The position numbers and the translations under genes are program-made. The notes beneath the pieces are model-generated. The model made no database searches. It was given only the letters and a program-made list of their open reading frames with translations, and was not told the origin of the DNA. From assembly GCF_902459465.1 (NCBI RefSeq), contig NC_047073.1, positions 12,648,001-12,712,000 on the forward strand: DNA of 64,000 bases, read 5' to 3'. The stretch's first letter is position 1, and the number at the start of each line of letters is the position of its first letter. Positions 184 to 64,000 of the stretch are shown here, one piece after another. This stretch comes from Asterias rubens. Its lineage: Eukaryota.

Positions 184-519
184 GCGTGTCAGCAGTTGCA
201 GACTTTACTAGCGTGACAGCTTCTGGCCCTTTGCAGAACGACACATACGTATTCATCGCAAGTTATTTGGTGACTGGAGCAGGTGATGAGCCCACAGCAA
301 CCAAAAAAGAAGAGCTTGGTTTAACACGATTCATAAAGACGGGTACAGGTACCGGTATCACTGAGTGGACGGATTCTTCTGATTCTTTACCATCGACATT
401 GCCAGACAATGTGAAGAGGAATATGTATAAAGTTCTCAATGCCACTACAGGAAGCGTCGGTGTGTTCAACTGGACGTATGGCTCCAACACAGTGAAAACG
501 ATACGGATGAGATCCACAG
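184..519 (+). CDS. Gene 1 exon: Tie-like N-terminal Ig1 domain
   Basis: ttttcag|GC...ACAG|gtgagt, 336 nt, phase 1-1; ends VKTIRMRS, like the Tie2 Ig1 end IRTMKMRQ; paralog exon 46508-46843. Confidence 0.85.
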
Positions 520-3500: not shown

Positions 3501-6500
3501 TTGACAATAACCAAGGTGTCCTAAGCCTTTAAACGTGAATTCTTTTATTCTTGTTTTGTTGTGTCATGCCGTTGTAATTTTGAACTCCCCAGCAACCCTT
3601 CTACCCATTTTTGTCACCCGCACGGTGAACCTCAACGACAACGTAAGTCTGACAGTTAAACAAAAGATACCAGATGAACAGAATCAACAGAGCAGATGGA
3701 GAAAGGATGGCGGCGATGTGGTAAAACAAAATACCTTTAACTTCGATATAAACAATGCCAATACCGACGACAGCGGTATTTATGAGTGTCACTATCAGCA
3801 TAAACGTGGTGAAGGAAATCAAGCGCTACTGAGATTAATCGTCAGAGGTAAACCGAATAATTTTATGTTTTTATTTAGTGACGATTATATCTTATGAAGG
3901 TTCTTCGTGAGTTTTTGCTACAACGTTTTTGTTTAATTACTCACCCGATGTTCATCCACTACCATACATTCAAGCAACACAATACAGAAGCTGATATACT
4001 GCTGGCCTTGTCAAGTAACTTTGAACATTGCAAAATAAATTCAAAGGTTGGGATCACTGTTTAGTTTTTCACTGTCTATGCTTTCGCTCAAATTCCAGTC
4101 TCAGCATGCAAGAGCACTTCGACAAAATACTATCCTGGTTTGAGGCTACATGTATATGGATGAGACTTTGTTTTACCAGGGTCAGTCTCTTTAATGTCTT
4201 GTTTGTGGGAAGGGGGGGGGGGGGGCATAATGCTTGACAAAAAAAACCCTTCATACATTGTGAAAGACTTTTTGTGGGGGAGTTAACTTACAACAAAGAA
4301 TACGTTACTCACTGCAAGAATCATAAAGCAATCTTTTGTCTAAGATCTCACGATTACCGTTACCGTCACTTCACAAAACAAACCATCTCGGTATAACATT
4401 GCTGCACATTCATATCAAGGGGTGTTGACAACTTTTCCCCTATCAATGAACGCAAAAAAGGAAAATAACGTCCTCCATACAACTCCATCCATTGACTGTG
4501 ACCTGAATATCATCATAGTTCGATACAAATCTCGGTAAACCTACAATATTTACAAAGGGAAGCACACATTTTCTTGTAACAACGTTTAGCATGACGTATG
4601 CTGATCATACGAGGTTTGTTTCCTTCTTTTCTTTGTTTACAGGTTGTCCCAAAAATAAACATGGCCCTCCTGACTGTCGCGACGAGTGCCCGAGATGTCT
4701 CAATGGTGGCATTTGTGATGACGTTGGGGGTGGCTGCATTTGTCCACCAGGGTTTGGTGGTAGACTCTGTGGAAGAAGTACGATTTTTTTTTATAAAAGA
4801 GACGATATTGAACAGCGGTTGATATGAAAAAAATCCCTAAGCACAACACAACATAAATCATCAACTGAGTGTAATTGCAGAAGCATATCATAAACCAAAG
4901 ATCTTTACAAAACCGTAACAAAAAAAAACTATAGCCGCATGTAACTCTTGAGTCAGTGGAGGTCTAACTTTTTAAATGAATTTAACTTAATATTGGACAT
5001 TGGACATTCAACTGTATCGGTTTGCACAGCGAATATCAATGTTGTTTTTACGATATTGGATATTGGACATATCAGCAGTGCGAGGACCCAATATTTATTG
5101 AGTGTAATTGATTCGAAGTACGGAAAACAGTGTTACCATATTGCTTTTTATGCATTATACGTAATACCACCAGATATTCAATCTTTGTTGATATCTTGTG
5201 AATTGTAATTAGTTAAAGGACCGAACAGCTTTGGGCGTCGAGGGGGCCTCCGCTGTGACGCTGTTGGGTTGCCACACGATGGTTCTACCTGCAAAGGAAT
5301 GCTGTTCTGTTTACCGGATCCATACGGATGCAGCTGTGCCGCTGGGTACCAGGGACTTGAGTGCAAGACAGGTACACCTTTAACTCCCACATTCAGTAAC
5401 CATATTCAAGGTTGTTGCCGTGGGCAAACTTATAATATGACCTCAGAACACAAAATAATCCCTCAATCTTCAAACGGCAGCTCAAATTACACCCCTTCAA
5501 ACAAATATCTTAAATACTGGACTGTTGACTTTGGGAACCGGCGCCCTTGAATGGCATTTTCTTTGTCAGATACTGTGCGCTCTATACATGTAAGTGCTGT
5601 ATATTATTATTCTGTATTACTATTATTTTAAATTCATCAGTTAAACACACAACAGTGTTTTAAAGTACTAAAAACAAAACGTCATTTCGGTGAAGAAAAA
5701 AAAAATGCACACTACAACATATCTCCCCTCCCCGCTGTGTGCTTTAACTTTGTTCGTATCAAGGTGGTTGTGCGTCCAGGCCCATTGAAGCAGTACATGG
5801 ATGACGTCTCTATAATTGGGTGGAACTGTAGGGGAACGTTAACAATTCGCCAAAGTTATCTTCAGATACAACAACACGGACTTCATACCTTGTATTGAGA
5901 ACCGCTCAAGACAAATGTTTGTAATTTGTAAAACAATAATTTCAGCGGTAATAGATTCGATACGTGCGATATGAGCGTTACAAAGCGGTTATAAAAGACA
6001 CAGACAAACTTGCGCTCATTTGTTTAGAGCTTTATCTCTGGTTCTTTCTTAACTGGTTCAGGTTGTACTAATGGAACATACGGTGCCAACTGTGCCCAGA
6101 TATGTCACTGTGCCGAAGGGGTGTCATGTAATGGAACAACGGGTGAATGTGATGGAGACTGCGCAGCGGGATACAAAGGAGATAACTGTCAAAGTAAGAG
6201 GACATGCCTTCAGTTAACATTTGAAAATGTTGAGGAATTCAAACTATGATGTAATGATCTCTTTAGATTGTATCGATGGCAAATTTGGTGCAAACTGTGC
6301 CCAGAACTGTCACTGTGCCGACAGTGCGTCATGTGATGGAACAACGGGTGAATGTGATGGAAACTGTGCAGCGGGATACACAGGAGATAGCTGTCAATGT
6401 ACGGATTATAGCTGGATATTGGAAATTTAAGAAACACCGAATTTGATTTCAATTTCTACATTAATAATCATCATGTATCTATTCCTATTTCCCAGTACAA

Positions 6501-9500
6501 TGTACCTCTGGTGAATTCGGTTTGAACTGTGCCCAGACTTGTCACTGTGCGGACGCGTCATGTGATGGCACAACGGGTCGGTGTGACGGAGACTGTGCAT
6601 CGGGATACACAGGAGACAACTGCCAAGGTACGTGTCACTGGTTTTTACCTCTTTTAAATAATCAAGAGCCTACGACGTGGTTCGATTAAGAATATCGGAA
6701 TGTTTGCTAAGAAAGAAAACACAACAGACAGCAATTTAGTTAGATTCTCTTCTCTCTCAATTATAGTTATTATTATTATGAAAATTATCTCAATATCTCA
6801 ATATTAAAGATTCAACAAATACAATACAATACATTCAGTTATAAAAACAATCAATAAGGCAATGGTTCAAAATCATATTAACTCCTTCAGTATTATCAAC
6901 GGTTCACAACTGTGCGAAATTATATTTGAGTGGCAATTCACCAAGGTGAAACAACAAGTAAAAATACTCAACAACATATGAGTCTGAGGAAATATTAACA
7001 AATCGCAGGTTTGTAAAAGGAAACAACAATAAGAAATACTGAAGCAGTTAATGGCAACAATACACAATGATATATAATAGGTCTTAGCTGGTTTCGCGCT
7101 TCAAGTGGACTTGGTAGAGACTCTCATTGGAAGGTCGACATCAGATTGGCTCCGAAGTCCAAGAAGTGACTCTGACGAATTCCAGGAAGACGACGAAGGG
7201 GGTTTGAGAGCGGGACTGGCGAAAAGTTGAACCGTGTCAACTTCCCAAGCGAGGCCTGTGGGCTAGTCTGTATCAACAGAGCACGTGGTAAAGATGCAAG
7301 AAGGGGACTTAGGAACGTACTTAGGGAAGTAACAAATGTTCCAAACAAAATCTACGCAAAGTGTAATTATCTAAACACTTTCAAGAAGTCTTCCTTGCAC
7401 TAGGCCGATTTTCGCTCTGTTAAAAGTCTTAACTCATCATAAACAAATTCAACTATGACTTACACAAATATAAAGAACATACAATAAAATATAAAACACA
7501 GTAACACTCTTCCAGTGCATACTGATAACCTTCATGAAACTTAAACATAAGGGAACGATAAGAAATCGTCTATATGCGTACATGTGTATAACACGATAGT
7601 GGTCAATCCAGATCAAAGGTCACAACTGTTTACGTGCGTAACAGCAAACAGTCGTCTAGTCTATACTTAAATGGAAAGGAATGTGCTCGGACATCTTCAA
7701 GTGTGACAAGGGGTTATCTAAGGACAATGCTTGTCCAGCACAACTAAAGTTACGTATTGCCATGGTATTGCTTAGCAAAAATGTAGGAATATACCAATAA
7801 CAAAGTATATCATAAATACTAATCAGAAATAGTTCAATCACATAATAATCAAATGTGGAAGGCGCTATGAGTGAAATCACGGTATATAAAGTAACAGGTG
7901 TTTCGATAAACCAAATAGGTTCTATCAAACAGAAAAAAACGTATCGAACGGTAAAAGAATAGCACTGAGTGTAAAAATCTAACTGCTAACTAGCAATAAA
8001 TGCACTATACAACTAAATCATATCGGCAATAGAAAGTAAGAGGAATATACGATTAAATAGACGGAACTCCTAAAGCTTTTCCGTGCACATGATAAACAAC
8101 AAAAATATTACACAATAAAATACTCAAGGAATCTATACATCTTAGCAGCATTGTTCGAATAATCAACATAATTGTCTAAAACTCATATTGAACTGTACCA
8201 TCCATCTTGAGTCTTACTCCAACTACCTTGTCGAACAAATCTTTCAAAGTCAAATGCACAAGTGATCAATCTTATACAATAGAAAGAAATAATCAAAGCT
8301 TACCTGTATCAACAGAGCACGTGCAAGAAGGGGATTTAGGAACGTACTTAGGGAAGTAACACATGTTCCAAACAAAATCTACGCAAAGTGTAATTATCTA
8401 AACACTTTCAAGAAGTCTTCCTTGCACTAGGCCGATTTTCGCCCCGAGGATCCAGAGGAAAACGAGCCAGGATATACCAAGCTGGTCACGCACTCGGACA
8501 GGAAAGTTAAACTATGATTGGCCAGAAATATTAAAACAATAATATCCTGGTTGGGCTTGACCAATGAGAAAAGTATTAGTGGCCTAAGTTCCTAAGAAAA
8601 CGTGTGGGCAGCCAAAGAAAATCAAATCCGGGCACAATTCAAGGAAACTACTGACCTTACAACAGTTATTGCAACATAGCCTCACGTCATGTCCCTGGGG
8701 GCAACCAACTGCTATGTCTTATGGTCAAGGAATTTCTCAAGGATGTGGTACTATAAACAAATGTTTCTCAGAATTATAAAACTAAGAAAAACTAACACCC
8801 AAACAGGAGGTGAACGTTGAAGCAATGACTCTATAATAAACTTAAGAATCCTCGTTGGACAACTTAAACTAAATAAAATAATCTTCGTCGGACTATTAAC
8901 TAAAGAAAGATTTCTTCGTCGGACTAATACAAATATGTTATAATATGCAATTTATAACAGAGTCCGACATACGGAAAAATGCCTTCAACTGAATCTTGAA
9001 ATGTTAGGAAGTTCAATTTTACAATGTTTACTTTTCTGCTTCTCAGTGTGTATCGATGGCAAATTCGGCGTCAACTGTGCCCAGAACTGTCACTGTGCCG
9101 ACGGTGCGTCATGCGACGGTACAACGGGTGAATGTGATGGAGACTGTGCAGTGGGATACAAAGGAGATAGCTGTCAAGGTACGGATTATAGCTGGAAATT
9201 GGTAATTTAAGAACAACCAATTTGAGATGTAATTTCTACATTAATAGTCGTCATGTCTCTCTACTTATTTTTCAGTACAATGTGCATCTGGCCAATTCGG
9301 TTTGAACTGTAACCAGAACTGTCACTGTGCGGACGCGTCATGTGATGGAACAACAGGTGAATGCGAAGGAAATTGTGCAGCAGGATACACAGGAGATAAC
9401 TGTCAAGGTAAGGGAAGAGGACATGCCTTCAGTTAACATTTGAAATGTTCGGGATTTCAAAATATGCTGTAATGTTCTCTTTCCTACTCTTCAGATTGTA

Positions 9501-12500
9501 TCGATGGCAAATTCGGTGCTGACTGTGCCCAGACTTGCCACTGTGCCGACAGTGTGTCATGTGATGAAACAACAGGTCAATGTAGTGGAAGCTGTGCCGC
9601 AGGATACACTGGGAACATTTGTCAAGGTATTGAATACAATACTAAGTAAGCACAAACTTGGCTTCTACTAACTATTAATGTTGAGTTGGACATTGCCTTC
9701 ATAGTTTTTTTGTTTTTAAAAGGAACTTGGAGTAACTCAAGTGGTTTACTGGACCAAATAATTATAGGTGTCAACTAAAGGATTGTGACGGTGTTTTTCC
9801 ATTTTATGTTAAATGCTAAGGTTTTCTTAAACGGTCAATTATGTTATACATGTACATAAACATGTGTTGTGTGCAACTATACACCAACATAATGGAAATT
9901 TTAATTGAAAAGACGATGGCATTTTTTAGATATTGACGAAATTATGTAGCAAGTGTAATAAGAAAACACAATCACAGAAGTGCTACTGACATAAACGCTT
10001 CTCAGACTCGAATTGAAGGGAATAGCAACTGATCTTTTTACATAACATACATTACTTTGATGTGAAACGTTCTCAAAATGGTTTATGTTATCCAAAGTTG
10101 ATAAGTTGATGTATGAAGCTTACCGAAAGCTGTATGTTGCCAGAGTGATTACCAAACGTACGCATTCCCTTTATAAGTTGTTATAATGGTGTTTTTGATT
10201 CAACAGAGCAATGTCTTCCCTACGAATATAAGCTATCGTGCAGTACGACTTGTACAATATTAGGTAGGTTGCATTCATCTGCTGAACCCAGATATGTAGG
10301 CTTGTTCCCAACTCGATCTTCCCTATCTGTGATTCTTTTATGATGAAATTTAGATACTCGTTGTTAATCTTTAAATCAAAAAATGGTCTGATAAATTTTC
10401 TTCCCAATGTGTCTTCCCTATTTTAAACTTTTTTGGGGTCACATAATTGCTGATGTTTTTTGTTTGTTAGAGCAAAATATTATGACTTACTGTTTATATC
10501 CTGTTTATATCCTGCATTGCCTTTTGCATTATTCTTATTGTAGCTCAGTCGTGTCTCTCTGCATGGATGTATTATTAAAGTGAGGCGTGGTCTCCAAGGT
10601 CAATGTAATCATGACATTTAAGGGATTAGTTCATATACTGGTTCATTTTCACCCATTGAGCAGTGACTTTGTGAAGTGAGTTGTATACGCTCTTCACGAT
10701 CTTTTATACACTCGGAATGTTCCAATTGATTTCAGATCCCAACATCATACCCCAACGTCTCAATGTGTCTTCTTATTCTGCTGATGATTCATTCACTCAC
10801 ACATTATCATGGGAACCAGTAATGTGCCCATCAAAAGGCTTCAGTATTGTGAACTACGTATATAAGGTGCTTGATGGACGTGGGAGTGAAGTTGAACTAG
10901 TTGCAGTGGAGAGTACATCGGTCAGTCTTCACTTGACACATTGCACAAGATATCAACTCGAAGTTGCTGCACGAACGAGTAAAGGCATCGGAAATTTCGG
11001 CACAGCATCTTACACAACTAAATCAAAAGGTACAAAAAGATAACTTTCACATAAAGTGTTGTTTCTTTAGTTCAAGTTTACAATTAACCATAAATTTCCA
11101 GATTGATCGTCGATGGTATAGCGGCTTGCGCACTCTGCTCTTATCCAATGCTTTGGAACTGAAAGTCAGAAAGAATAGTAATGAACAAGTATAACTAGGC
11201 CACCTTGTGTTCTGCAAGTTCAGAACACAGTGCCCGACAAAACATGGGACACAAATAACGGGTATCATAGTTACTGTAGCTTTTTGTTTTCTATATATGA
11301 TCATGATGCATTATTAGCATGATTCTCCAAAGAACGGGAACTAAGATGTGACATGAAAATAAATATACCTTGGTATCACGCAGTAATTCTTTCTTTTTGT
11401 AATTTTAACCGTTTCTTCTGTAGTTCCCAATCAGGTAGCAAATGTAGCAGTATCTCCCATCGGTCATAATCAACTGACAGTATCATGGGATGCTCCTCTC
11501 ACCGACAATCAGAGTCCTTGTCCTGCCACTGACTACCTGGTGACCTATGACCTTATAAACCTTGAGCAGTGTCAGGAGGTTAGTAGAGATGTTGAAATAT
11601 TGACCACAACCTACACTACAATCACAATTAACAGACTTGATGCGTTCTCAACATACCGGGTGACCGTTACATCGAGAAACCAAGCTGGAAGTAGTACCCC
11701 CGTGTACAGAACTGTGAAAACGACACAATCAAGTAAGTAAGAGTTGATGTTACCATGGAAAGTTGTGTTTTCATTTCCTTCCATTGTGCAGAGTTTAGTT
11801 AATCATGGACTGTACCATTTTTCCTTAAAACTCCGCTCTTACGTTTGTTTTTCTTCTTATATAACTAATTGTAAATTTACGTGGTTTCATAACAGTACCA
11901 GGAGCACCAACTGTAATTGTCGACTCGACATCGACAGATTACATCGAGTTCGCATGGGAGCTTCCATGTGGAAGAACGGGTGGCAACATAACAGAGTACC
12001 CATACAAGTATAAAAAAGCAACAGACAATGAGTTCATCCAGCCTATCACAACAACGGATACACGTATAAGGATAACTTTCTTGACGCCATGCACTTCATA
12101 TGTATTTCAAGTGAGAGCTTTGAACAACATCGGAAGAGGACCGTGGTCCAATGAGGCTAGGCAAAATACAACACAAAAGGGTAATTTATGGTATATCCAA
12201 CGTCATAACAGCATAACAATAATTAATGAATCATTATTGCAATGCAAAACTATTTATTTATTACCAATAATGACGTTATTATAAACAACCGTGTTTATTG
12301 CGCGAGCTCTTTACATTCAAAGATTGAGTAGCTGTTCAAAAAAGTGATGTCATCATTACCGCAAGGGGATGCTAGCATTTTTAAAAGTGATACCTTTTTT
12401 TGTCCCTCATTCACACAATGCCACCAACAAAATTGTTTGAATAATTATTTGGTGGAATTAAAGTCGTTGAAAATTAACGTTTGTTGCTTAATTAGTAAAA

Positions 12501-24500: not shown

Positions 24501-27500
24501 ACTTTAACCGACGTCGTCACACACAAGAAAATCTTTGTTGTGTTATTTGTTACTTAACGTGAAAAACAAAACAAAAAACCCAACAACAACAACAACAATT
24601 TAACTCCAAGAGGAACTTTACTTCTTCAGACATTGAGCTTTCAAACCGTGGCTGTGATGCATCCGCTGACAAAGTCTCCCGTTCATCTACCGACCATTCC
24701 TCCGGACAGTCAGCCAGTATCCCCGGCCCATCTGCACCGAAATCACCCACTAAGGATCAGTCTGGTGCCGGTCCGTCAACATCAACCAAGCCGACTATCA
24801 AACAGAAGCCGAATATTAGGTCCAGACCCAAGTCAAAGAGTGCTGTTAAGGGTGCATCTGGCTCATCAACAACGGGAGTCGTGACCATGACTGATCTAGC
24901 ACGGTTTATCAAAGCAAGAAAGTCTGGAAAGATCAATGCATTTCAGCAAGATTTTGAGGTACATTTAACCGGTGTCTAACATTCTCTGCTTCTTAAAAGG
25001 GGTCGCTAAGTTAAAATTCAGTTCTTTTACGAACAAACTTTCCACTAGATAGGTTCCTTTAGAAGGTGGGGAAATTACGCAGGTCTCCATATAAACCTTA
25101 TGTTAAAAGCCATCTTATTTAATTTAGTGGCCCAAGACTGCCAAACTTCGAAAATATATTTGCTTTGTTGATTAGGAACATTGAAATTAACATTCGATCA
25201 ATACAACAAGTGACTAAAACCTTTGACTCTTACAAACAAATGAATGTAAGAACGAGGTTGAACAAAAATACGTATACATTCCCTCAAAATATTACAATTT
25301 GTTCTGTAACTATTCGTTTTTATAAGACGCTCCCAGCTGTACCCAACCATCCCCAGACGGAAGCATTGGATGATGCGAACAAGAAGAAGAACAGATACAA
25401 AAATATCTCTGCATGTAAGTAAAAGTTTTAATCCAGAGGTCTTTGGTTAAAAAACAAGCTCCAGGTCTTTGTTCAACCCAACCTATTAAAAACTAGCCCA
25501 ATCACTTTCCACTGAGGCATATTAGTTACTATACTTAAAAAGTATGTTTGATAGATCCTTATTCAAATAAACATAAAATATAAAGCATGTATTGAATAAT
25601 AAACAAACAATAAATTCACGTCACATTGATCATACTTTTCTTTACAGTTAAATTTGAGTTTGCTGGTGACCTAATCAAAACAAATATTGACTAATATTGT
25701 GGTAGTTTTGGAAGGCCAGTGTCAGTGACACCAGTGTCAGTGACACTCTGCTTCAACTTACTGCACAGATTGCAACATTTGATGTCAAAGTTTACAATTA
25801 ATTAGTTATTCACTTCTTATGTGCAATAATGAATAACGGTAGGTAATTTTGTAAAATGTCTCATTGACATGTATAGCAAAATTAACAACAATGACCACTG
25901 TTTTGTTTGGCTTTTCCTCAAGTCATGCAACCTTCACTGTTTTTTATATATATTTTGTTTTCTTCTTCAGACGACCACTCACGTGTTGTGCTTGAGCCAC
26001 TTGAAGGACATCCACATTCGGACTACATCAATGCATGTTACATTGACGTATGTGTTAAGTTATTATTTTACCTTTTAGCAATAAATAATGACTATGTAAA
26101 TTTCTTGTTGAAAACTTAATTGATGTCTACTTTGAATTCTTTACAGGGATACAAGTACGATGCCAAGTATATTGCATGCCAAGGTGAGTCAAATTTAGAT
26201 TTTCAAACTACGAACTGTCAGTTTAGGGGTAAAAGACTCCTAAGTGATTTATTTTGTGAGAGCATGAATCGCCAAGGTCCGTTAAAGTAGCATTGCAATG
26301 AACTGAAACGGTTGGGTCTGAAACTTCTACATTTGTCGTAAGTTAAAACCGTCTTATATATCTTTTAACAGATTTTGGTACTTGTTGGTACTTTTTGTTA
26401 CACAAAACACAATGTCCACAGATTTACATTGAACTTACACCGTTTGAATAATAGCGGAAGTAGATGGCGTACCTTATTGGTTGCTGAGGTGTTGTAGTTT
26501 GTGAGAAATAAGTAAAACAATGTCATGAATACGCTTTTACATGCTCAAATCATTTTCGTCTAATGATAACTGAGACGACAATTATTTTTATGACATTGTT
26601 TTACTCATTTCTCAAAAAACACAGCACATCAGTATATAATATTTTCAGGGAAGCTTTCTACTATCATTATCTTCAAATTGTGTAAGTTTAGTGTAAATCT
26701 GAAGACATTGTGTTTGTTGTCCTACAAAAAGTACAAAGACCATTTTAAGAAGTAAAGCTGAGTTGTTTTAATGTTAAAATAAACATGATTTACGGTGATA
26801 CACTGGTCAAATTTGATATTCAACTTTTCCAAACCCTGGAAGCAACTTCCCACATAATTAATGTTGATGAGGTTCATGAAAAAAATAATACATGTTGTTT
26901 ATTCAGGTCCCAATCAGACGACCGTGATCGACATGTGGCGTATGGTATGGCAGGAACGTGTCGGAAAGATCATCATGCTCACAAACCTCGTGGAGAATGG
27001 AAAGGTGACAACATTTGTCATACGTCATAACCTAATAACTAGTTTGAATTGAATATGCAATCCACCATTAAACATAAACTGACAAACTTGTAGAAGTTTT
27101 GGGATCGATCGGCCATCTGGGTCACAAGAAAATAGTGAAAACCAATTACACATGTTGCATGACATCGATTTGGAAAAAAATAAATGAATAAGTCCCTTAA
27201 ATACAAACTGTATCGCAGTTATGTTTTTAGAACAACGTTACTTAAAACCATAGTCAAATCATTTCACGGACTTTTGTTGATGAGCGTGTACATGTCCAAT
27301 TGTTGTGAGTTATAAGAAGCGCATGTGCTCTACTGAGAAGTGGGTATTTTTAGGCGGGGTGGTTAAAGTCAGGCCATTTAGACAGACAACAGCAGTGTCT
27401 GGAGTCAGTACAAGGGATCGATAAATTAAATAAGTGAATGTTAAAACGTTTTTCTATAATGCAGGATAAATGTGAGAAATACTGGCCAGACGAAAAATTG

Positions 27501-30500
27501 TTCAATGATTATGGTGAAGTTTTTGTCAGAAATGTTGAAGAAAAGAAAAGTCCGACCTTCATCTTGAGGACTTTCCACTTGTCAAAGGTAAAGTATTGTT
27601 TTCTAAAGACACTGAACACCTTTGGTAACTATCAAAGACCAGTCTTCTCACTTGATGTATATCAAATATGCACAAAATAAAAAACCTGTGAAAATTTGAA
27701 CTCAATTGGTTGTCAAAGTTGCGAGATAATAGTGGAAGAAAAAACCCTTGTCACCACGAAGTTGTGTTTTTCATATGCTTGATTACGGGACCACAAAATA
27801 TAATTCTGAGGTCCGATATCAAATTCAAATAACATTTTAGTGGAGTATTACTTCTTTCTCGAGGACTACGTTTCTTGAGAGCGAGCCGTTTCTCACAATG
27901 TTTCATACTATCAACAGTTTTCCATCGTTTCAAAGTTGTATGCTTACAAATATTTTGTTGAGAACCAATTGATTGCTTATCGAAACTCACAGTCGGTGTA
28001 ATTGTATTGTCTCGCACTTGAACTTCTTTACTAAATGAGTTTGATTGTTCTCATTATATAATTTTCATCGTTCCAATATTGTTTCGAAAACTACAGGCTC
28101 CTTGTATCGTGTTTCTGTGTCTTTGATGTTTGAAGCTAATGTAGTCGTTATAATAAATGGTACCTTATTTCCACTGTTTACAGAGCAGCGAGCCCGAAGG
28201 CGAGTACCGTGAGGTTCTGCAGTATCATTACATCACATGGCCCGATATGAAGCCACCCGAGTCTTCATCCCTTCTACAGTTTATTGGACGAGTACACGCC
28301 TCAGAAACAACCCAACATGGTCCTACTATCGTGCACTGCAGGTATACTCACATCTAAAGACCTTTAGCATTATGCCACCATCTTTGTCATGTTATCTCTA
28401 TTCAATAACAGTGATGGGTGTCAATATTCATTGTACAAACAAGGACCAGACTATATTTTCCTACAGGCCTCGGTTTGGTTACATTGGTTGAAAAGGAGAA
28501 AATCAAGATGGCCTCCCAAATAAAGGTATATTGCTTTGTCCCATCGTATCAACAAAGTAAGTGAAAACAATGTGCCTTTCCTTTTACTGTTACTTACTAT
28601 TATAGCAACTATTGGAAACTGTTTTTTTTTTTTCTTTTTTTTTTCTTTTAACTAGTGCTGGGGTTGGCCGAACTGGAACCTACATAGCATTGGACGCCAT
28701 GATGGAACAGGCTCAGGCAGAAGGACAGGTCGATGTACTCAGCTTTGTGCGTAACATGAGGGACAAGCGCTACTTGATGGTTCAAACTGTGGTATGGGCA
28801 CAAACTTTAATAATTGTAATTAATCAATTAATTTATTAATTTTCATAAGTCATCTCCCCATGGAAGTTCGGGTGCTTTAGTTAAATGCGTTGACATAATT
28901 GCTTTGTTTAGATTAATCACGTGTTCAACATCCAACGAGAATCCCGTTCTTGACACTTGTGTCCTTGAGCAAGATGCCGTTCGGCAGCGGGGAGGGTATT
29001 ACCGGTGTCAGATGCAATTGTGTCCGCCATGCAATACTGTCCGCTCCGGACACTTTTGCATATGCAATCGTGTCTGGGGCTATGCAAAAACCGTCCGGTG
29101 GAAATGTACATGACACTGCGCGCGTAAGCAAGCACAACCGATTATGCAGCAGCGTCCGGGCGGACACGATTGCATATGCCAAACCGTCCGGCGGACATTA
29201 TTGCATATGCAATAATGTCCTCCGGGTAGTATTGCATAGAGGAGATCATTGCATGCGACACCGGCACTAGCTATTGCCAAACGCAACTGTTAACATAAAC
29301 TGATTGAACTTACTACTGAATAGCAAAAATGCAAAAAAGGTTATATTAAAAATGAACTGCTCTTTCACGCGGTCAGTGCCTCTTTCGTGTTTAACCAGAA
29401 CTTTTTTCCAAAGTTGCCGATGAGGAAACAAATTTAATATGTTGATTATTTTCTTTATTCATGTTAATTAGCACCATAAGTGATCAAGCCCTGTCCTGCT
29501 GGGAGAATTATTGACACTCCCCTTGAGATGTAATTATCGTAATCCTATGCAGTTTATTATACATTGTTTCGACTTAAAGCACGCCAATTGCCGCAATGAA
29601 AAGACAAATCGAACTGCACTCACTTCACGTTGATAATTTTTGTTTCGTTTTTATTTAATTTTTTTTTTTGGGGGTGGAATAATTGTCTTGGGTGTTTCAT
29701 GATCTGGTTTTGTGATCCTTAGGAGTCAGAGTAAAGAGTTCTATTAAACCTTGATAGTGACTTAAAAGAATACGTTATCATTTGAATTATTCAAATTTTC
29801 ATTTGTACAGGGTCAGTTCAAGTTCATCTACGAGGCTTTGTTGGAGTCCAGTCTGTCCGAGAACACTGCCATCTCAGTGGATCGATTCCCACAAGATCTA
29901 ATCAAACTGAAAAAGCGTGATAAGAAAACTGGAACAAACGGCATGGAAGACCAATTCCAGGTATACTATAAGTTTCAACGGATGAAGTTGTTCAATTGAC
30001 ATGGACAACAAACTATATTCTGCACATCCATGTGGAGAACGGTTGTTTTTCTTTGTGTTTTCCTGTGTTTGATATCCTTTAAATATCATTTGTACTTGGA
30101 GAGCACCACATAGTCTTTACAATGCACCTAATGTGAGCTTTGTGTGGTCATATTTTGTTTCTGTCTTCATAACGTGGTCGATAATTAAAGACAATTTCTA
30201 GTTGTATGCCTATTCTTTACCATTTACACTTGTTTGTCGTTGTAATGACTCACATGTTTAAAGCCAGTGGACACTATTGGTAATTGTCAAAGACTAGCCC
30301 TAACAGTTTGTGTATCTCAACATAAGCATAAAATAACAAACCTGTGAAAATTTGAGCTCAATCGGTCATCGAACTTGCGAGATAATAATGAAAGAAATAA
30401 ACACTCTTGTCACACGAAGTTGTGTGCGTTTAGATGGTTGATTTCGAGACCTCAAGTTCTAAATCTGAGGTCTCGAAATCAAATTCGTGGAAAATTACTT

Positions 30501-33500
30501 CTTTCTCAAAAACTATGGCTTTTCAGAGGGAGCCGTTTATTACAATGTTTTATACCATCAACCCCTCCCCATTACTCCTCACCAAGTAAGGTTTTATGAC
30601 AATAATTATTTTTAGTAATTACCAATAGTGTCCACTGCCTTTAATGATCAACCAAACTACTCTTGTTTTCGTAACAGATGTTGGATACTTTCACTGCATC
30701 AATGAGTGACGACCAGTGCTACGGAGGGAGGCAGCCTGACAACGCAGACAAGAACAGATTTGAGGATTGCATTCCAAGTATATTTTTAATATAAATATTT
30801 TTTTTTTCTGTTAGTATAGTGAACCAAGAAACACGAGCCGTCTAAAAAAAGACAAATTCATTTTTAAAGGCAGTGTACACTATTGGTAATTACTCAAAAT
30901 AATTATTAGCATAAATCTTTTCTTGGTGACGAGTAATGGGGAGAGGTTGATGGTATACAAAATTGTGAGAAACGGCTCCCTCTGAAGTGCCATAATTTTC
31001 GAGAAAGAAGTAATTTTCCACGAATTTGATATGGAAACCTCAGATTTAGAACTTGAGGTCTCTATATCGACCATCTAAATGTACACAACTTCGTGTGACA
31101 ACTTTGATGGCCAATTGAGCTTAAATTTTCACATGTTAGTTATTTTATGCATATGTGGAGATACACCAACTGTGAAGGCTAGTCTTTGACAATTACCAAT
31201 AGTGTCCACTGCCTTTAACATTGGTATCCGAGGCAGTCGAGGTAAACACTTCAACCTCGCATTATGTAAATCAAGTTGTTAAGAAACATCATCGAGCAGC
31301 AAAACAAACTTGTGATTAGACTGGAATTCATATCCATGACCAGTCGCCATATGCCCTGACTTCTTGGCAAAGTAACAACAAGTAAGCATAAAAGTAGTTA
31401 ATCAAACAACTTCTGAACTTTGCTTTCCGTATCGCATTTACTTTGAAAATTATAAAGCTGGGTAATAGAAAGTGTTAAAAAAGTTACAAAGGAAAAGCTA
31501 CATTTTGTGAACCCTGTCCTGCTTTTTGTTTCCCCATATACGCAACAACTTTTTCAAATGTCGGTCAAATCAACCCATCATTAAGATGCAATTTAAGCTA
31601 ACATGTAGTCTGATACCTTGCTAGGGGACAGCACCAGACCATACCTGATGACAACAGGTGACGAAGGTAGCACTAACTACATCAATGCTACATTCTTAGA
31701 GGTAAGTTAAAACCAAAAGGTTCATGACATCGACGGTGTCTGGCAAACTGGCTGGAGCAACTCAATGACTCCATCGATTGATCAGTTTGTATTTTGCTGA
31801 TTGTCTTAAAGGCAGTGGACACTATTGGTACTTACTCAAAATAATTATCAGCATAAAACCTCACTTCGGTAACGAGTAATGGGGAAAGGTTGATAGTATA
31901 AAACATTGTTAGAAACGGCTCTCTCTGAAGTGACGTAGTTTTCGAGAAAGAAGTAATTTTCCACGAATTTGATTTCGAGACCTCAAGTTTAGAACTTGAG
32001 GTCTCGAAATCAACCATCTAAAAGCACACAACTTCGTGTGACAAGGGTGTTTTTTCTTTCATTATTATCTCGCAACTCCGACGACCAATTGAGCTCAAAT
32101 TTTCACAGGTTTGTTATTTCATGCATATGTTGAGATACACCAAGTGATAAGACTGGTCTTTGACAATTACCAATAGTGTCCAGTGTCTGTAAACCAAAGG
32201 TGGGATTTTACACCATTGCTTCGTTCTTAGAGGTACAAACTAATAAAATGCCAATGACATTGATGGTATACAGCCAACTGACTGGAGCAGTTCGATTATT
32301 TTCACTTATGATCAGATTGTGGTTTGCTAAGACGATAATTTAATAAGGTCCAGTGATGCCCACTTGCTTGCCGTTCCACCTTCCAGGTTGAAAACTTATG
32401 TGGATAGAAGTTTCTCAGTTGCAGCCCCCGGGCCTGTGGAACGGCTTGCCTCTCACCCTTAGATCACATTACATGAAATTTCTTAATTCAAATCCAATCT
32501 CAAAACTTACTTCTTGAGTCAAGACTACCATTAATTTTTCCATTGGTCATATGAATAGTATTTTTTTTCTAGATACCAGCGCTTTATAAGATGTATTATT
32601 ATTATTTATTATTAAATATTATTCGAATGTTTGATTTACTTTGGCTATCCAGGGTTCCAGAGGCAAGCACTCCTACCTGGCCACACAAGCTCCCCTACCC
32701 AGCACGATGGGTGATATATGGCGGCTGGTGTTTGACTACAAATCATCCTGCATTATTATGCTCAACTCCATGGACAATGACCCGGTGTGTGAACAAACAT
32801 AAAATTTTCTTAAAAATGTATTATTTTAATTAAATTTATTTTGAACAGTAGTACTTCATAAACTAATTTCACTCCATTGACAAGATGACACATAACTTAC
32901 TATTAATTGTTGTTTTTTGCAATACAATAACTTCATTCTGGAAATAAACTGGAACAAATGTTATCTTTGAATAGCTTTGCCACATAATGCAATTTTTTGT
33001 TACTTTTGAAAAAATTTGAATCGTGACATTATTAAATAAGCATAATTTAAGTTGACTTTCAACTAAAGTTTTTTATTGCATTATTATTCCGAAAATCATT
33101 GCCGTAAAAAAAAAAGAGTCGTGAAGATCACAGATTTACTCAAAACTTCGGTCTAATGATGATGATAGTAGAAAACATCCCTTGAAATATTTCTGTCTGA
33201 AAATTAATATATGATGATAAATAAATAGTCTAACTTCGTGTTTGAAGTTTATTACCCAGTGAGCGTTTTATTCATTTTTATTTTGGCATCGATGCAATGC
33301 AAAATTTGTAATCGTTTTTTTACTATTTTCTCGTGACCCAGATGGCCGATCGATCTTAAACTTCTACAGGTTTTTCAGTTTATGTATAGTGTGGATTACA
33401 TAGAGTGCTTTCACTGCCAGCAACTGTTTTGTTAGCAAAACCAATTATGTAATGTTCCTTTAAGATAACGTGGGCTAGACTTTAATACCAGGTTGAAGTT

Positions 33501-36462
33501 AATGTCATTATTGTATTATATAAGTCGTTTTTTACTTATGAAATAAGTAAACAGAAATGACTCATCTATTGGTTTTGTTTGCCCCACTCATCAGCAGAGC
33601 ATCCCACAGTACTGGCCGGAGGAGGGCAGCATGAGCTTTGGACCACTGACTGTACAGTTACTGAGTGAGGATCAACGCGACGAGGACATGGTCGTGCGAC
33701 AATTCGGCATCACGTACCCACTTAGAAATGTCAGTATTTGTTGCAACAAACAATTGTAGCTATGTTAATGTTGTTTGTCTATTTTTTTGTAAACTTCTGT
33801 TTAGACTATTTCCGTGTGCTGTGTGAACGCACGTAAAAGAACCCAGTACACTTTCATTCATTCATTCATTTATTTTATTTTTACCACACACAAAGAAACG
33901 GTTATCGAAAAGATTGGCAGCATAATGCGCCATTGTTAACCATTACATTGTGCTATGTAAAAGGAATACGTAGGATTTGAAACTTTGCATGGTGGAAATA
34001 ACATGTACATGTAGAAGAGTTAGTGGTAACACCATGTAATGACTATCTCTAAATGAGTTGGGGTGGTTCTGAAAAGAATCATTGGCTTAACTCGACGTTT
34101 CGAGAGAGAGAAATACGTATCACAATCCAGTCCCATCATTGCAGGAAAATACGGTATGACTTTAAAATGTAAACCCAGTGACAGATGTGCACGCTATGTT
34201 ATAAGAAGCCACTCTTATTCAAACTATGTTGGAAAAAATCTTTCTCCTATTTGTGTAAAAACATAAAATAAAACTGTGGCTTTCCATCTGGTTTCTTAAT
34301 TAAATTTTAAGTAGGCCTACATTTGTTTTGACCTAATCTTGCACAAAACTTCTCGTGTAATTAATTTGTTTCATTCTAATTGAAAATATAAATTAGCAGA
34401 AAGAGGTGCAGACTGTATGCCATATCCAGTTCCTGCAGTGGCCCAAAAAGAAGGACATCCCCAGCTCGCCGTCTAGTCTCCTTAAATTGATTGAGGCTGT
34501 CAACACGTGGACGGAGGAGCATCCTGATGGACCACTCACAGTCCACTGCATGTAAGTATCGCTTAAAGGCAAGGGACACTATTGGTAATTGTCAAAGACT
34601 AGCCTTCACAGTTGGTGTATCTCAACATATGCATAAAATAACAAACCTGTGAAAATTTGAGCTCAATCGGTCATCGAAGTTGCGAGATAATAATGAAAGA
34701 AAAAAAAACACCCTTCTCACACGAAGTTGTGTGCGTTTAGATGGTTGATTTTGAGACCTCAAATTCTAAACTTGAGGTCTCGAAATCAAATTCATGGAAA
34801 ATTACTTCTTTCTCAAAAACTATGACACTTCAGAGGGAGCCGTTTCTCCCAATGTTTAATACCATCAACCTCTCCCCATTACTCGTCACCAAGAAAGGTT
34901 TTATGCTAATAATTATTTTGAGTAATTACCAATAGTGTCCACTGCCTTTAAAGGCAGTGGACACTATTGGTAGCTAGTTGCTCAAAACAGTTATTAGCAT
35001 GAAACCTTACTTGGTAACGAGTAATGGGGAGAGATTGCTAGTATAAACCCCTTGTGAGAAACGGCTCTCTCTGCAGTGACATATAGTTTTCGAAAAAGAA
35101 GTAGTTTTCCACGAATTAGACTTCGAGACCTCAGAATAAAATTTTGAGGTCTCGAAATCAAGCATCTGAAAGCACACAACTTCGTGTGACAAGGGTGTTT
35201 TTCTGTCATAGTTGTCTCGCAACTTCCACGACCAATTTAGCTCCAATTTTCACAAGGTTGTTGTTACTATATACATATGTTGAGATACAGCAGGTGAGAA
35301 GACTGGTCTTTGACAGTTACCAATAGTGTCCATTGTCTTTAACACCAGATTGGTTCTAAGTGTTTGGCTGGTGGCAAATGTGAACGATAAAACCAAAATA
35401 CATTTTGGGTAGCAACAAAAATCGCGTAAAAACCCAAAGGGAAACGGAATGGGTAATTTTAACAAGTACCTATTTTTTTAATTAAGGTTCAAAAAATAAA
35501 AATGTACTTAATAAATTGTATGGTCAATTTGGGTGTGACCCCTGGCTACGGCAGCTAAGGGTCTCGGGCTTCTGAATGTCACACAGAACAAAGTAATTTA
35601 CAACAGGTAAAACCCCATCCATATGGCTAGATAGCTCAGTTACTTAAACCTGAGGTCGTTGGTTCTAATTCCGTATTTGTCTTAGTTCAATCTTAAATCA
35701 TGTTTTAACAAGGTATTGTCAGTTGCCGAGTAACCAAACACTTGTTCTAGAGTTGTTCGATTATTTGCTACTACTATTATTCTCTTTATCAGTGACGGAG
35801 AGGGTTGCAGTGGGACATTCTGCACCCTGGTCACCCTCTTAGATCGCCTAGAGCAGGATGGGGTCATTGACGTCTTCCAGGCAGTTAAGAAACTCCGCTC
35901 AACTCGAGCTGGAATGGTCAAGACATTGGTAAGAATATTCAAAATATTACGGTCCTGCATAAAACAGTACAACAACAACATTTGACCTAGCTGAAGAAAA
36001 TCAGTAAGTCTAAAATTTTGGTCGACTGTATTTTTTTTGAGAAAACAAAAAGATGTTGCTGTTGCAAAGAAGTAAAATGTGTAAAATAACTGCACAAAAA
36101 CATGATTTGTGTGGGCTTCCCCAATATGAAATTAAACTGATAGTTTAAGTTGTCCTGCTTAATTAAACTGGGTCAAGAGTGATACTTGCTAAAGAGCCCG
36201 ACGGATTGCCAACAACAAACATTGTTCACCATATTTTGTTTATACTAAAATGTAATGTTTGCCTTGAAATTACTGGAAGGCGTGAGAATAATCTAACCGT
36301 CAAAATTTGTTGTTGAAATGCATTTTTATGTTAAGTTAGTTATTTTGTTTTTCAATCTGTGGTTCTTTATTTTAGGCTCAGTACCAGCTGTGCTATCAAG
36401 TGGTCAAGTCGTATCTGGATGAAGCTTCATCGTCAACTATCTATGAGAACGTACACCGTTAA
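184..36462 (+). CDS. Gene 1: receptor-type protein tyrosine phosphatase with Tie-like (Ig-Ig-EGF) ectodomain, 6 extra EGF repeats, 11 FN3 plus a juxtamembrane FN3-like domain, TM and tandem PTP D1/D2; 5'-partial
   Basis: 45 exons traced by hand, all GT-AG with compatible phases, 7595 coding nt in window ending in TAA at 36460-36462. Motifs: [11 protein letters not shown] (Tie EGF), [26 protein letters not shown] (PTP). Signal-peptide exon lies upstream of position 1 (gene 2 has it). Confidence 0.9.
1414..1620. mobile_element. Kolobok-type MITE family A, internally deleted copy
   Basis: Ends ...gtgtcctgtgcc|ttaa; orthologous copy at 47706-47913. Confidence 0.7.
3194..3532. mobile_element. Kolobok-type MITE family A
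   Basis: TTAA at both ends; internal ggctccctctgaagt...gaaagaagtaattttccacgaatttg shared with other copies. Confidence 0.75.
3593..3847 (+). CDS. Gene 1 exon: Tie-like Ig2 domain
   Basis: ccccag|CA...AGAG|gtaaac, 255 nt; RTVNLNDNV...W.K.G...DSGIYEC...ALLRLIVR matches the Tie Ig2 pattern. Confidence 0.9.
4643..5371 (+). CDS. Gene 1 exons: Tie-type EGF1 (4643-4777) and EGF2 (5213-5371)
   Basis: CLNGGIC...CICPPGFGG and [22 protein letters not shown]; 135 and 159 nt phase 1-1 exons with GT-AG. Confidence 0.92.
6062..9626 (+). CDS. Gene 1: six tandem 132-nt EGF-like (8-Cys, MEGF/laminin-EGF-like) exons
   Basis: Exons 6062-6193, 6267-6398, 6496-6627, 9047-9178, 9276-9407, 9495-9626; each 44 codons, phase 1-1, consensus C..G.FG.NC.Q.CHCA...SC...TG.C.G.CA.GY.G..CQ. 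Confidence 0.92.
6633..8969. mobile_element. 2337-bp insertion with TGTC...GACA ends and a 4-bp TSD (LTR-retroelement-like, non-coding)
   Basis: TACG at 6629-6632 and 8970-8973; removing the insert restores gtacggaaaaatgcc, the uninterrupted intron start seen in gene 2 at 53238. Confidence 0.75.
7268..8442. repeat. About 140-bp direct repeat inside the 2.3-kb insertion
   Basis: 7268-7415 and 8304-8442 (ctgtatcaacagagcacgtg...ccgattttcgc), near-identical apart from a short indel. Confidence 0.9.
10736..17032 (+). CDS. Gene 1: nine alternating Cys-bearing FN3 domains
   Basis: Exons 10736-11029, 11424-11732, 11896-12180, 12612-12923, 13079-13375, 13659-13970, 14478-14762, 15166-15298 + 16134-16309 (one domain), 16745-17032; FN3 W and L.P.T.Y.V.V motifs; all domain boundaries phase 1. 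Confidence 0.9.
15596..15977. mobile_element. Kolobok-type MITE family A (gene 1 only)
   Basis: ggacactattggtaatt...ttaccaatagtgtccactgcc|ttaa; absent from the paralogous intron 61277-61898. Confidence 0.8.
17446..20481 (+). CDS. Gene 1: two Cys-free FN3 domains, each split over two exons
   Basis: 17446-17684 + 18682-18751 and 19538-19644 + 20265-20481; phase-0 internal junctions; motifs W.AP..P.G.I..Y and [13 protein letters not shown]. Confidence 0.88.
20559..20821. other. Assembly gap (263 N) in a gene 1 intron
   Basis: Run of N; flanking exons are phase-compatible, so no exon is required, but a hidden symmetric phase-1 exon cannot be excluded. Confidence 0.99.
20969..22520 (+). CDS. Gene 1: membrane-proximal FN3-like domain of RPTP type
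   Basis: Exons 20969-21068, 21959-22214, 22478-22520 give SSYQIGV...YVAAEL...[17 protein letters not shown]...YEIYVGAVS, the conserved juxtamembrane module of R2-type RPTPs. Confidence 0.85.
23100..24958 (+). CDS. Gene 1: transmembrane exon and Ser/Pro-rich intracellular juxtamembrane region
   Basis: 23100-23202 encodes [23 protein letters not shown], followed by RKWK (24191-24270); 24630-24958 is S/P/K-rich and ends FQQDFE. Confidence 0.88.
25327..29960 (+). CDS. Gene 1: PTP domain D1, predicted catalytically active
   Basis: Exons 25327-25414, 25971-26047, 26147-26183, 26907-27004, 27465-27587, 28184-28341, 28656-28791, 29811-29960: [52 protein letters not shown]. Confidence 0.95.
26345..26750. 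mobile_element. Long-TIR MITE-like repeat
   Basis: 26385-26470 is roughly the reverse complement of 26650-26735 (gtactttttg.tacacaaaacacaatgtc...); a forward copy lies at about 19205-19345. Boundaries approximate. Confidence 0.55.
27603..27960. mobile_element. Kolobok-type MITE family A, diverged copy
   Basis: Left end and core recognisable; right end decayed, boundary approximate. Confidence 0.6.
28999..29272. mobile_element. GC-rich TIR element with internal palindromic repeats (superfamily unassigned)
   Basis: Ends ccggtgtcagatgcaat / attgcatgcgacaccgg; repeated ttgcatatgc and ccgtccgg units. Confidence 0.65.
30258..30644. mobile_element. Kolobok-type MITE family A
   Basis: TTAA|AGCCAGTGGACACTATTGGTAATT ... 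AATTACCAATAGTGTCCACTGCCT|TTAA; TTAA TSD with RR...YY termini is the Kolobok signature. Confidence 0.85.
30678..36462 (+). CDS. Gene 1: PTP domain D2 (pseudophosphatase) and C-terminal tail
   Basis: Exons 30678-30777, 31625-31701, 32653-32784, 33598-33729, 34400-34551, 35793-35928, 36376-36462: KNRF, NYINA, QYWP, WPK instead of WPD, VHCIDGEGCSG lacking the catalytic Arg; ends STIYENVHR*. Confidence 0.92.
30864..31218. mobile_element. Kolobok-type MITE family A, opposite orientation to 30258-30644
   Basis: Same TIRs and TTAA flanks; internal sequence reverse-complemented. Confidence 0.85.
31806..32192. mobile_element. Kolobok-type MITE family A
   Basis: TTAA|AGGCAGTGGACACTATTGG...CCAATAGTGTCCAGTGTCT|GTAA. 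Confidence 0.85.
33085..33463. mobile_element. Kolobok-type MITE family B, reverse orientation
   Basis: Ends tatgtaatgttcct|ttaa; contains gtgacccagatggccgatcgatc; left boundary approximate. Confidence 0.65.
34563..35342. mobile_element. Two family A MITEs in inverted tandem sharing one TTAA
   Basis: Copies 34563-34951 and 34948-35342; junction gtgtccactgcctttaaaggcagtggacac. Confidence 0.88.
35624..35675 (+). mobile_element. Degenerate tRNA-derived SINE head
   Basis: A-box-like tagctcagt and B-box-like ggttctaattcc; cannot fold as a tRNA. Confidence 0.3.
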
Positions 36463-40689: not shown

Positions 40690-41501
40690 CATGTTGCTGA
40701 ACTTGGCTACACGAATAACAATGAGGCAAAGTCACAAATCAAATGTGCAAAAATTACCGTTGTCTGTGAACGGTCAATAGGTAATGCTCAATAATCAAAC
40801 CGATCAAGCTTTTTAGAACCATAAATGGCTTACAAAATGGTTTGAACCAGTGAGCTCCTCGGACATAAACCCTCATCTCATGAAAAACACCTTGTTTGAT
40901 GGGTATTTGCAAGACGATATTCTACAGCCGAATGCAATCCCATATTTGCAGACTCTTGGATCAAATGCCATCTTTCAAGATGACAACGCTCGCCCCCATC
41001 GAGCCCTACCGTTGACTGACTACCCGAAAAATGTTGGGGTGCACCGGATGGATTGGCCCGCTAACAGTCCAAACCTGAATCCCATGGAACATCTGTTGGA
41101 CCAGCTTGGCATCGCTGTCCACGCCAAAACCACCAACACATCAACTGTGGCTGACCTAACCAGGTTCCTTAATGAAGAATGGAATGCCATCCCTCATCAT
41201 CAGCGCATCACAAGACTTGTGTGCAGCATGAGAAGGTGCCAGGCTGTCATCAACGCCTTCGGATCATCCACTTGTTACTGAACTTTTTGATTCAATAAAG
41301 TGTATTAAGATCAGTAAGTTGTCTTGCTCTATACCAAACGTCTTGTCTCAATAAAGTGGATTATGATCAGGAAGTTGTCTTGCTTGTTTGAATTACAGTG
41401 TCAAGTTGATTGTTCACACAGTAACACAAATTTCTAATTTTGGCACATTTGATTTGTGACGTTGTCTCATTCTCATTAACGTGGTCAAGTCCAGCAACAT
41501 A
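40690..41501 (+). mobile_element. Internally deleted Tc1/mariner transposon
   Basis: TA flanks; imperfect TIRs of about 60 bp (catgttgctgaacttgg...gtcacaaatcaaatgtgc / reverse at about 41440-41501); ORF remnant 40850-41281 with FQDDNARPHRA...DWPANSPNLNPMEHL (Tc1 catalytic C-terminus, SPDL changed to SPNL). Confidence 0.88.
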
Positions 41502-43582: not shown

Positions 43583-43643
43583 ATGGCGGGACAACTTCAT
43601 GTGAAACTCAAGCTGCTTTTCATATTGTTAGGAGTGTTTGAAG
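43583..43643 (+). CDS. Gene 2 first coding exon: signal peptide
   Basis: acagtcATGG context; MAGQLHVKLKLLFILLGVFE then G|gtatag phase-1 donor, splicing in frame to G-VSA-VVDF; plausible cleavage after VSA. Confidence 0.8.
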
Positions 43644-63968: not shown

Positions 63969-64000
63969 CAATTCAGAACTGACTCCGCGGCAGTACAGTT

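Follow-up and report, generated by a model that had tools for sequence, protein, structure and literature searches.

Receptor tyrosine kinases and receptor tyrosine phosphatases are as a rule regarded as distinct families, each with ectodomains of its own. What directs a receptor phosphatase to a particular kinase is a long-standing question, and for most of these phosphatases no ligand is known. The present analysis concerns a gene (gene 1) on the forward strand of a 64,000-nucleotide stretch of the Asterias rubens genome (contig NC_047073.1, positions 12,648,001 to 12,712,000; about 37% G+C; hereafter the window), in which sequence alignment and structure modelling confirmed a head built like that of the Tie kinases (Ig2 and EGF1-3, preceded by a more diverged Ig1) in front of a tandem tyrosine phosphatase.

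Among the closest described systems, Tie1 and Tie2 (TEK) have Ig1, Ig2 and EGF1-3 followed by a further Ig domain (Ig3), three FN3 domains, a single transmembrane helix and a cytoplasmic kinase. VE-PTP (PTPRB), a receptor phosphatase with a long FN3 ectodomain, is functionally coupled to Tie2; it has FN3 repeats only outside the membrane and a single protein tyrosine phosphatase (PTP) domain (R3), and shares no head with Tie2. The tandem receptor phosphatases (R2B with PTPRK/M/T/U, PTPRA, and LAR/PTPRS) combine an intact first PTP domain (D1) with a degenerate second one (D2) in a type I membrane layout. The vertebrate paired immune receptors KIR, Ly49, SIRP and PIR are clustered, fast-evolving receptors with near-identical ectodomains and opposite signalling tails.

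Gene 1 shares with Tie1/Tie2 the domain order and the motifs of Ig2 and EGF1-3, behind an Ig1 that resembles Tie Ig1 at profile level, then an FN3 stalk and a single transmembrane helix, but has four or five more EGF repeats in the place of Ig3, 12 Fn3-type domains instead of three, and a tandem phosphatase instead of the kinase. With the tandem receptor phosphatases it has in common the intact D1, the degenerate D2 and the type I layout; a membrane-proximal domain of the Fn3_PTPRU type with a dibasic site, and a long juxtamembrane stretch, may recall R2B in particular. The MAM domain of R2B and the LAR-type Ig head are absent from gene 1, whose N-terminus is the Tie-type Ig-EGF head.

The Tie-type head and its phosphatase tail

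The head is encoded by five exons on the forward strand: Ig1 (184-519; phase 1/1, acceptor ttttcag/G, donor CAG/gtgagt), Ig2 (3593-3847), EGF1 (4643-4777), EGF2 (5213-5371) and EGF3 (6062-6193). The four head motifs quoted in an initial annotation, made from the DNA letters of the window, were all located on the forward strand in the order given there, namely VKTIRMRS at 492-515 in Ig1, ALLRLIVR at 3823-3846 at the end of Ig2, and the EGF1 and EGF2 motifs at 4735-4770 and 5305-5337. The spliced head (query positions 24-259) aligned colinearly with positions 91-319 of the Tie2 chain (phmmer against the PDB, E 1.2e-37; 34% identity), from the last strand of Ig1 through Ig2, the counterpart of the Tie2 ligand-binding domain, EGF1 and EGF2 to the end of EGF3. 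Searched as single exons, EGF1 and EGF2 had Tie2 as their top PDB match (2gy5, E 3.6e-9, and Tie2 at its EGF2, E 7e-7), while the Ig2 exon by itself matched contactins, NCAM and CD22 rather than Tie2 and gave generic Ig matches in Pfam. The Tie signal of the head thus comes from the EGF exons and the colinear multi-domain alignment, not from Ig2 alone. Among proteins of 385-1225 amino acids the vertebrate matches to the head were all Tie1/Tie2 (best 120 of 780 hits; E about 1e-37, coverage 87-97%).

Structure prediction agreed with the alignments. An AlphaFold model of residues 1-306, computed with 43 homologs (predicted local distance difference test, pLDDT, 88.8; predicted template modelling score 0.82), had as its sole multi-domain PDB matches in Foldseek three Tie2 ectodomain entries (for 2gy5: E 3e-21, template modelling score 0.68, root mean square deviation 3.1 A over 247 columns), followed by single Ig domains at E 3e-5. 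No Ig3 was detected past EGF3, where the likeness to Tie ends.

The Ig1 exon is much more diverged. Alone it had no Pfam match (including Ig_Tie2_1) and no PDB sequence match. A full-library HMMER search (1.8 billion proteins) returned five hits, consisting of close paralog exons, the gene's own model and P0003, the last of which was discarded as a low-complexity false hit. Its AlphaFold model is a beta sandwich (pLDDT 70) for which Foldseek gave generic Ig folds only, none of them Tie-specific. The link to Tie Ig1 comes only from a profile-profile comparison in hhalign, in which an ambulacrarian Ig1 profile with the window exon as master matched a vertebrate Tie1/2 Ig1 profile over 90 columns (probability 93.5%, E 2.3e-7). 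The Ig1 of this Asterias clade (186-518 in the window) is without any cysteine; Patiria and Acanthaster relatives keep the pattern DFTC...FAC.

Behind the stalk, a transmembrane exon (23100-23202) and a long juxtamembrane region of two exons (24191-24958) lead into D1, which is encoded by eight exons (25327-29960), and then into D2 with the C-terminus and the stop codon (30678-36462). Pfam recognized Y_phosphatase in both (twice in the protein, E 2.7e-145) and no kinase domain. The initial annotation was right in placing a Tie-type head on an intact D1 plus D2. The motifs of D1 are complete (KNRY 25387-25404, WPD 28238-28258, (HC)SAGVGRTG 28654-28677, QTV..Q from 28783), and by these motifs D1 is predicted to be catalytically competent. 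In D2, WPK replaces WPD (34439-34456) and the P-loop is without its arginine (35797-35817); lacking the general-acid aspartate and the P-loop arginine, D2 looks inactive. Against the PDB the tandem scored best with PTPRA (E 3.9e-134), PTPRS and LAR, and D1 taken separately scored best with PTPRK (259 bits), PTPRT (258) and PTPRM (243), closely followed by PTPRG (240); such PDB scores alone do not settle the phosphatase subtype. Over the whole spliced protein Pfam reported fn3, Fn3_PTPRU and the two Y_phosphatase domains, no MAM domain and nothing Tie-specific, which explains the uninformative name of the NCBI model.

This model, P0002 (2428 amino acids; 'receptor-type tyrosine-protein phosphatase F-like [Asterias rubens]'), was retrieved in a full-library protein search with the Ig1 exon as query and has the same exon chain as that read from the window, where the forward strand from 184 to 36462 forms 45 exons in a single open frame. 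P0002 mapped to 45 forward-strand exons (423-36459), and each of its 44 junctions had exactly one GT..AG solution that reproduces the protein (44/44). Its start is an internal methionine of the Ig1 exon, which itself spans 184-519; with this exon complete the frame comprises 2508 open codons, and the stop codon lies at 36460-36462. Exons bounding Ig, EGF and FN3 domains are without exception of phase 1/1, and the window starts downstream of the signal-peptide exon of gene 1. In this Asterias clade every NCBI model begins at the internal methionine of Ig1 and is therefore 5'-truncated. From the N-terminus the domain order is Ig1, Ig2, EGF1-3, four to five more EGF repeats, 11 FN3 domains, the Fn3_PTPRU-type domain, the transmembrane helix, the long juxtamembrane region, D1 and D2.

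An assembly gap (20559-20821, without strand) falls within this chain, and the initial annotation had named it as a place where separate genes for the head and for the phosphatase might have been joined. The gap lies inside intron 24 (20482-20968), beginning 77 nucleotides past the donor and ending 147 nucleotides short of the acceptor. An FN3 domain is completed by exon 24, the next domain begins with exon 25, and the two exons meet in phase 1, so that the frame is preserved over the gap. In an RNA contig (X1 record 2), 20265-20479 is followed immediately by 20967-21068, and the resulting junction EVFTELPT/DLTPPDKP is identical in Asterias amurensis proteins from a separate assembly and present in diverged form in Acanthaster. 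By the RNA joint, the phase match and the junction in relatives a hidden exon in the gap was ruled out, and both sides belong to one transcript. Further contigs, from two RNA runs, contain the joints 22213>22477, 22518>23098, 23202>24191, 24268>24628 and 24956>25325, all GT..AG, and chain exons 26-31 from the membrane-proximal Fn3 domain through the transmembrane and juxtamembrane exons to D1; words from the head and EGF exons are present in the same two runs.

An Ig/EGF/FN3 gene merged with a phosphatase gene by annotation, or by a mis-join at the gap, could be suspected since the gap falls within the finding, the junctions from head to stalk come from gene models and splice logic, and A. amurensis has ectodomain-only models named 'sidekick-like'. 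Such an artefact is nonetheless highly improbable. One RNA contig connects the two flanks of the gap and others lead from the stalk into D1, the reading frame and the intron phases carry through without a break, and between head and phosphatase there is no stop, transmembrane exon or start. The same architecture recurs in independent assemblies of other genera, and the neighbouring paralog (gene 2) opens with its own signal-peptide exon only past the stop of gene 1. Gene 1 is one real, transcribed A. rubens gene for a type I receptor tyrosine phosphatase.

Ectodomains shared by phosphatases and kinases

Proteins with the head and a tandem phosphatase were predicted in Asterias, Patiria, Acanthaster, sea urchins, sea cucumbers, amphioxus, spiders, ticks, a sea spider and a barnacle, with N-terminal additions that vary (F5/8C, PAN or LCCL). 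In assembled sequencing runs, transcript-like contigs of 5.5-6 kb that group with the spider and tick proteins encode head and phosphatase in one open reading frame, hence the architecture exists in transcripts. As the initial annotation had anticipated for similar proteins in invertebrate genomes, Tie-headed receptor phosphatases exist only as uncharacterised predictions; no description of one was found in the searchable literature, which did not extend to the sea urchin phosphatase survey (Byrum 2006). The head was also found joined to C-type lectin, SRCR, CUB, F5/8C, PAN, LCCL, ZP and VWD/fibrinogen domains, many of its carriers being without an enzyme domain. The Tie head predates the vertebrate Tie/angiopoietin system and has a wider use, and automatic names such as 'phosphatase F-like' and 'sidekick-like' hide the architecture. 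Several A. amurensis models named 'sidekick-like' (P0007, P0013, P0015, P0016 and P0018) are ectodomain-only copies of the receptor type; they could be incomplete models, or else soluble or decoy forms.

Kinases that share the head, for which the initial annotation had suggested a search, were found in A. amurensis (P0017) and Patiria (P0037). Both have the same type of ectodomain as the phosphatases and are Tie-family kinases from the transmembrane exon onward. P0017 (2095 amino acids) is 75% identical to the gene 1 product over residues 1-1663, which is the entire ectodomain; beyond it come a transmembrane segment of another kind and a kinase with 83% identity to the starfish Tie-like kinase P0084 and 46% to vertebrate Tie1/2. 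At its locus 1.2 kb separate the final ectodomain exon from the kinase-type transmembrane exon, which stands at the phase-1 boundary also used in gene 1. No phosphatase-like sequence was present anywhere in the 47 kb of the P0017 locus, which rules out a read-through chimera skipping phosphatase exons. The Patiria kinase P0037 and the phosphatase P0036 share 74% identity across roughly 1180 residues of the ectodomain, and 86% within the head. The stretch that the starfish kinases share with the phosphatases comprises the head, the EGF repeats, the FN3 stalk and the Fn3_PTPRU domain, and the swap between kinase and phosphatase falls in the phase-1 intron that immediately precedes the transmembrane exon. 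A tree of 100 head sequences, built quickly and with a weak backbone, required at least seven changes between kinase and phosphatase and contained four well-supported mixed clades. Kinase and phosphatase receptors appear to have been built on the same ectodomain several times.

The reading that we favour, with a probability of roughly 0.55, is that gene 1 encodes a Tie-headed phosphatase of a starfish-expanded family that is paired with kinase siblings on a shared ectodomain cassette. Within this family the cassette is borne either by a tandem phosphatase or by a Tie-family kinase, with the phase-1 intron ahead of the transmembrane exon as the exchange point, and paralogs also trade sequence, Ig2 and EGF1 keeping old, distinct types while the rest of the gene is homogenised. 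The head would provide recognition, through a ligand or through contact. Since their ectodomains are nearly the same, kinase and phosphatase siblings would bind the same partner or associate in the membrane, as do Tie1 with Tie2 and VE-PTP with Tie2, and D1 would act on phosphotyrosines made by the kinase sibling; binding might then either oppose the kinase or shut the phosphatase off by clustering. Sister genes with a near-identical outer part on a Tie-type kinase may in this way form matched on/off receptor pairs. Unlike VE-PTP and Tie2, the starfish phosphatase and kinase siblings share the whole ectodomain.

Part of what the initial annotation had proposed, a paired kinase/phosphatase receptor system, gains real support from P0017 and P0037, which share their ectodomain with phosphatases. 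The head of P0017 is of the gene 2 type (92% identity with the phosphatase P0014, against 86% for gene 2 and 68% for gene 1), and the paired-receptor idea gains support from these sequences for the family, not yet for the head type of gene 1 itself. That the phosphatase is the 'inhibitory half' of such a pair is something we infer rather than observe.

Several points weigh against the pairing as an account of gene 1. Among the matches listed, neither a kinase with gene 1's own head type nor an A. rubens ortholog of P0017 was found, and the A. rubens kinases P0305, P0279, P0225 and P0247 have other or more distant ectodomains. P0305, on the same 17 Mb contig as gene 1, combines F5/8C, a Tie head and Fn3_PTPRU; P0279 is the canonical Tie of the species and matches Pfam Ig_Tie2_1. 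The kinase partners are gene predictions of which one locus was checked, in DNA only. For gene 1 itself, the RNA contigs match the window at 97-100% identity and could stem from an allele or a near-identical paralog, and the junctions from head to stalk rest on gene models and splice logic.

The same evidence could be read as a stand-alone recognition or adhesion phosphatase that works as other tandem receptor phosphatases do (by homophilic or matrix contact, or by immune-type recognition in a fast-evolving gene cluster) and is functionally unconnected with the kinase siblings. Its head would be a cassette popular in echinoderms and amphioxus, and exon shuffling would have left the shared ectodomains as a side effect. 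The many other architectures with this head, enzyme-less proteins included, would fit such a receptor, as would the tandem expansion of the family with mosaic divergence centred on Ig2, the missing kinase partner for gene 1's head type, and the Fn3_PTPRU domain together with the best D1-only PDB matches (PTPRK, T and M), which recall the homophilic R2B phosphatases. Gene 1 has no MAM domain, however, and in two starfish genera kinase and phosphatase genes have retained 74-75% identity over complete ectodomains of 1200-1660 residues and 86-92% in the heads, a conservation that exceeds what shuffling would be expected to leave without selection for matching. We regard the stand-alone receptor as less probable than the pairing of phosphatase and kinase siblings. 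Patiria miniata being an experimental model, kinase and phosphatase receptors on one ectodomain offer a tractable test case for whether a shared ectodomain brings the phosphatase to the kinase and whether a ligand turns both the same or the opposite way.

Ligand site and mosaic divergence of Ig2

In Tie2 both angiopoietins bind Ig2 via the motif Phe161-Glu169, and the substitutions F161A and P166A abolish binding (PMC8294587). In the Ig2 of gene 1 this motif is six residues shorter, with Asp for F161 and Val for P166, and it is equally missing in other starfish heads, in the canonical echinoderm Tie kinases and in Tie1. Tie1 is not known to bind angiopoietins. Because the motif is not conserved, the fold of the head is uninformative on a fibrinogen-type ligand, and the Tie head cannot serve to infer angiopoietin binding. 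The initial annotation had suggested that the receptor could recognize the same class of fibrinogen-domain ligands as the Tie kinases. Given the shortened motif, the absent Ig3 and the wide reuse of the head as a cassette in echinoderms and amphioxus, a fibrinogen-type ligand is not supported by the sequence. A phosphatase that acts as the inhibitory counterpart of a Tie kinase for an angiopoietin-like ligand would be in keeping with the Tie2-like fold of Ig2 and EGF1-3 and with the Tie-family kinases in the same genome, the canonical Tie P0279 among them, but we consider it unlikely, the F161-E169 motif being conserved neither here nor in Tie1 nor in canonical echinoderm Tie. Two sea cucumber proteins (P0055 and P0056, Apostichopus japonicus) have an N-terminal Tie-type head, VWD/TIL and a fibrinogen C domain in one chain.

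Gene 2 (NCBI model P0012) is a tandem paralog on the same strand that starts at 43583 and runs off the end of the window at 64000. Its signal-peptide exon (43583-43643, MAGQLHVKLKLLFILLGVFE) joins Ig1 (46510-46842) in phase, and its head type is the one also carried by the A. amurensis kinase P0017. Synonymous divergence (dS) between gene 1 and gene 2 is 1.21 in Ig2 (about 3592-3849 versus 49442-49699), 0.44 in EGF1 and 0.05-0.27 in most other exons. The genes are thus homogenised over most of their length while distinct Ig2 types persist, which points to old Ig2 types kept in otherwise homogenised genes via gene conversion or exon replacement. An A. amurensis paralog that bears the other head type has a D1 98% identical to that of gene 1. 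Positive selection on Ig2 was considered and found no support: by this crude measure, a ratio of nonsynonymous to synonymous divergence (dN/dS) of 0.25 with a dS of 1.2 indicates an anciently diverged rather than a fast-evolving domain.

More tentatively, starfish, and perhaps echinoderms and amphioxus more widely, might possess matched pairs in which one Tie-headed, FN3-stalked ectodomain is carried by a kinase or by a tandem phosphatase, the two being kept matched by exon exchange at a phase-1 intron and by gene conversion while the Ig2 tip diversifies into distinct types. If this were true, the pairs would be an enzyme-fused counterpart of the activating and inhibitory paired immune receptors of vertebrates, possibly for immune or self/non-self recognition. 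The starfish genes resemble KIR, Ly49, SIRP and PIR in their clustered paralogs, near-identical ectodomains, opposite tails and mosaic exchange; they differ in that the vertebrate receptors recruit enzymes via adaptors with immunoreceptor tyrosine-based activation motifs (ITAM) or via the corresponding inhibitory motifs (ITIM), whereas the starfish receptors have their enzymes fused.

Stalk and other features of the window

Between the head and the stalk of gene 1, four EGF exons of the Tie EGF3/MEGF type (6496-6627, 9047-9178, 9276-9407 and 9495-9626) stand in place of Tie's Ig3. An extra, intact EGF exon precedes them (6267-6398, 132 nucleotides, phase 1/1, acceptor tctctttag, donor gtacgg); it is unused in the NCBI model and may be a cassette exon. 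A short cysteine-rich exon (10207-10263) separates the EGF repeats from the stalk. The latter consists of eleven FN3 domains encoded by 14 exons (10736-20481), of which the domain-bounding ones are all of phase 1, and Pfam recognized fn3 in 10 stretches. The membrane-proximal receptor-phosphatase-type Fn3 domain follows at 20969-22520 (exons 20969-21068, 21959-22214 and 22478-22520) and matches Pfam Fn3_PTPRU (E 8e-12 for the exon, 4.6e-11 for the protein); all of these features are on the forward strand. Within it, at 22017-22037, lies the dibasic sequence SKRS. Proprotein convertases cleave R2B and LAR phosphatases at a dibasic site in this place, and the ectodomain of gene 1 may thus be processed as well.

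In gene 2, extra near-identical FN3 exon pairs (58663-59419 and 59983-60739) are present within 56872-60739, hence the length of the stalk differs between the tandem copies. Between the two genes, at 40817-41278, a transposase remnant was noted with a match to Pfam DDE_3 (E 4e-4, below the cut-off) and the motifs DDNARPH and NPMEH. Repeated short elements that share one encoded 18-letter stretch occur in several introns.

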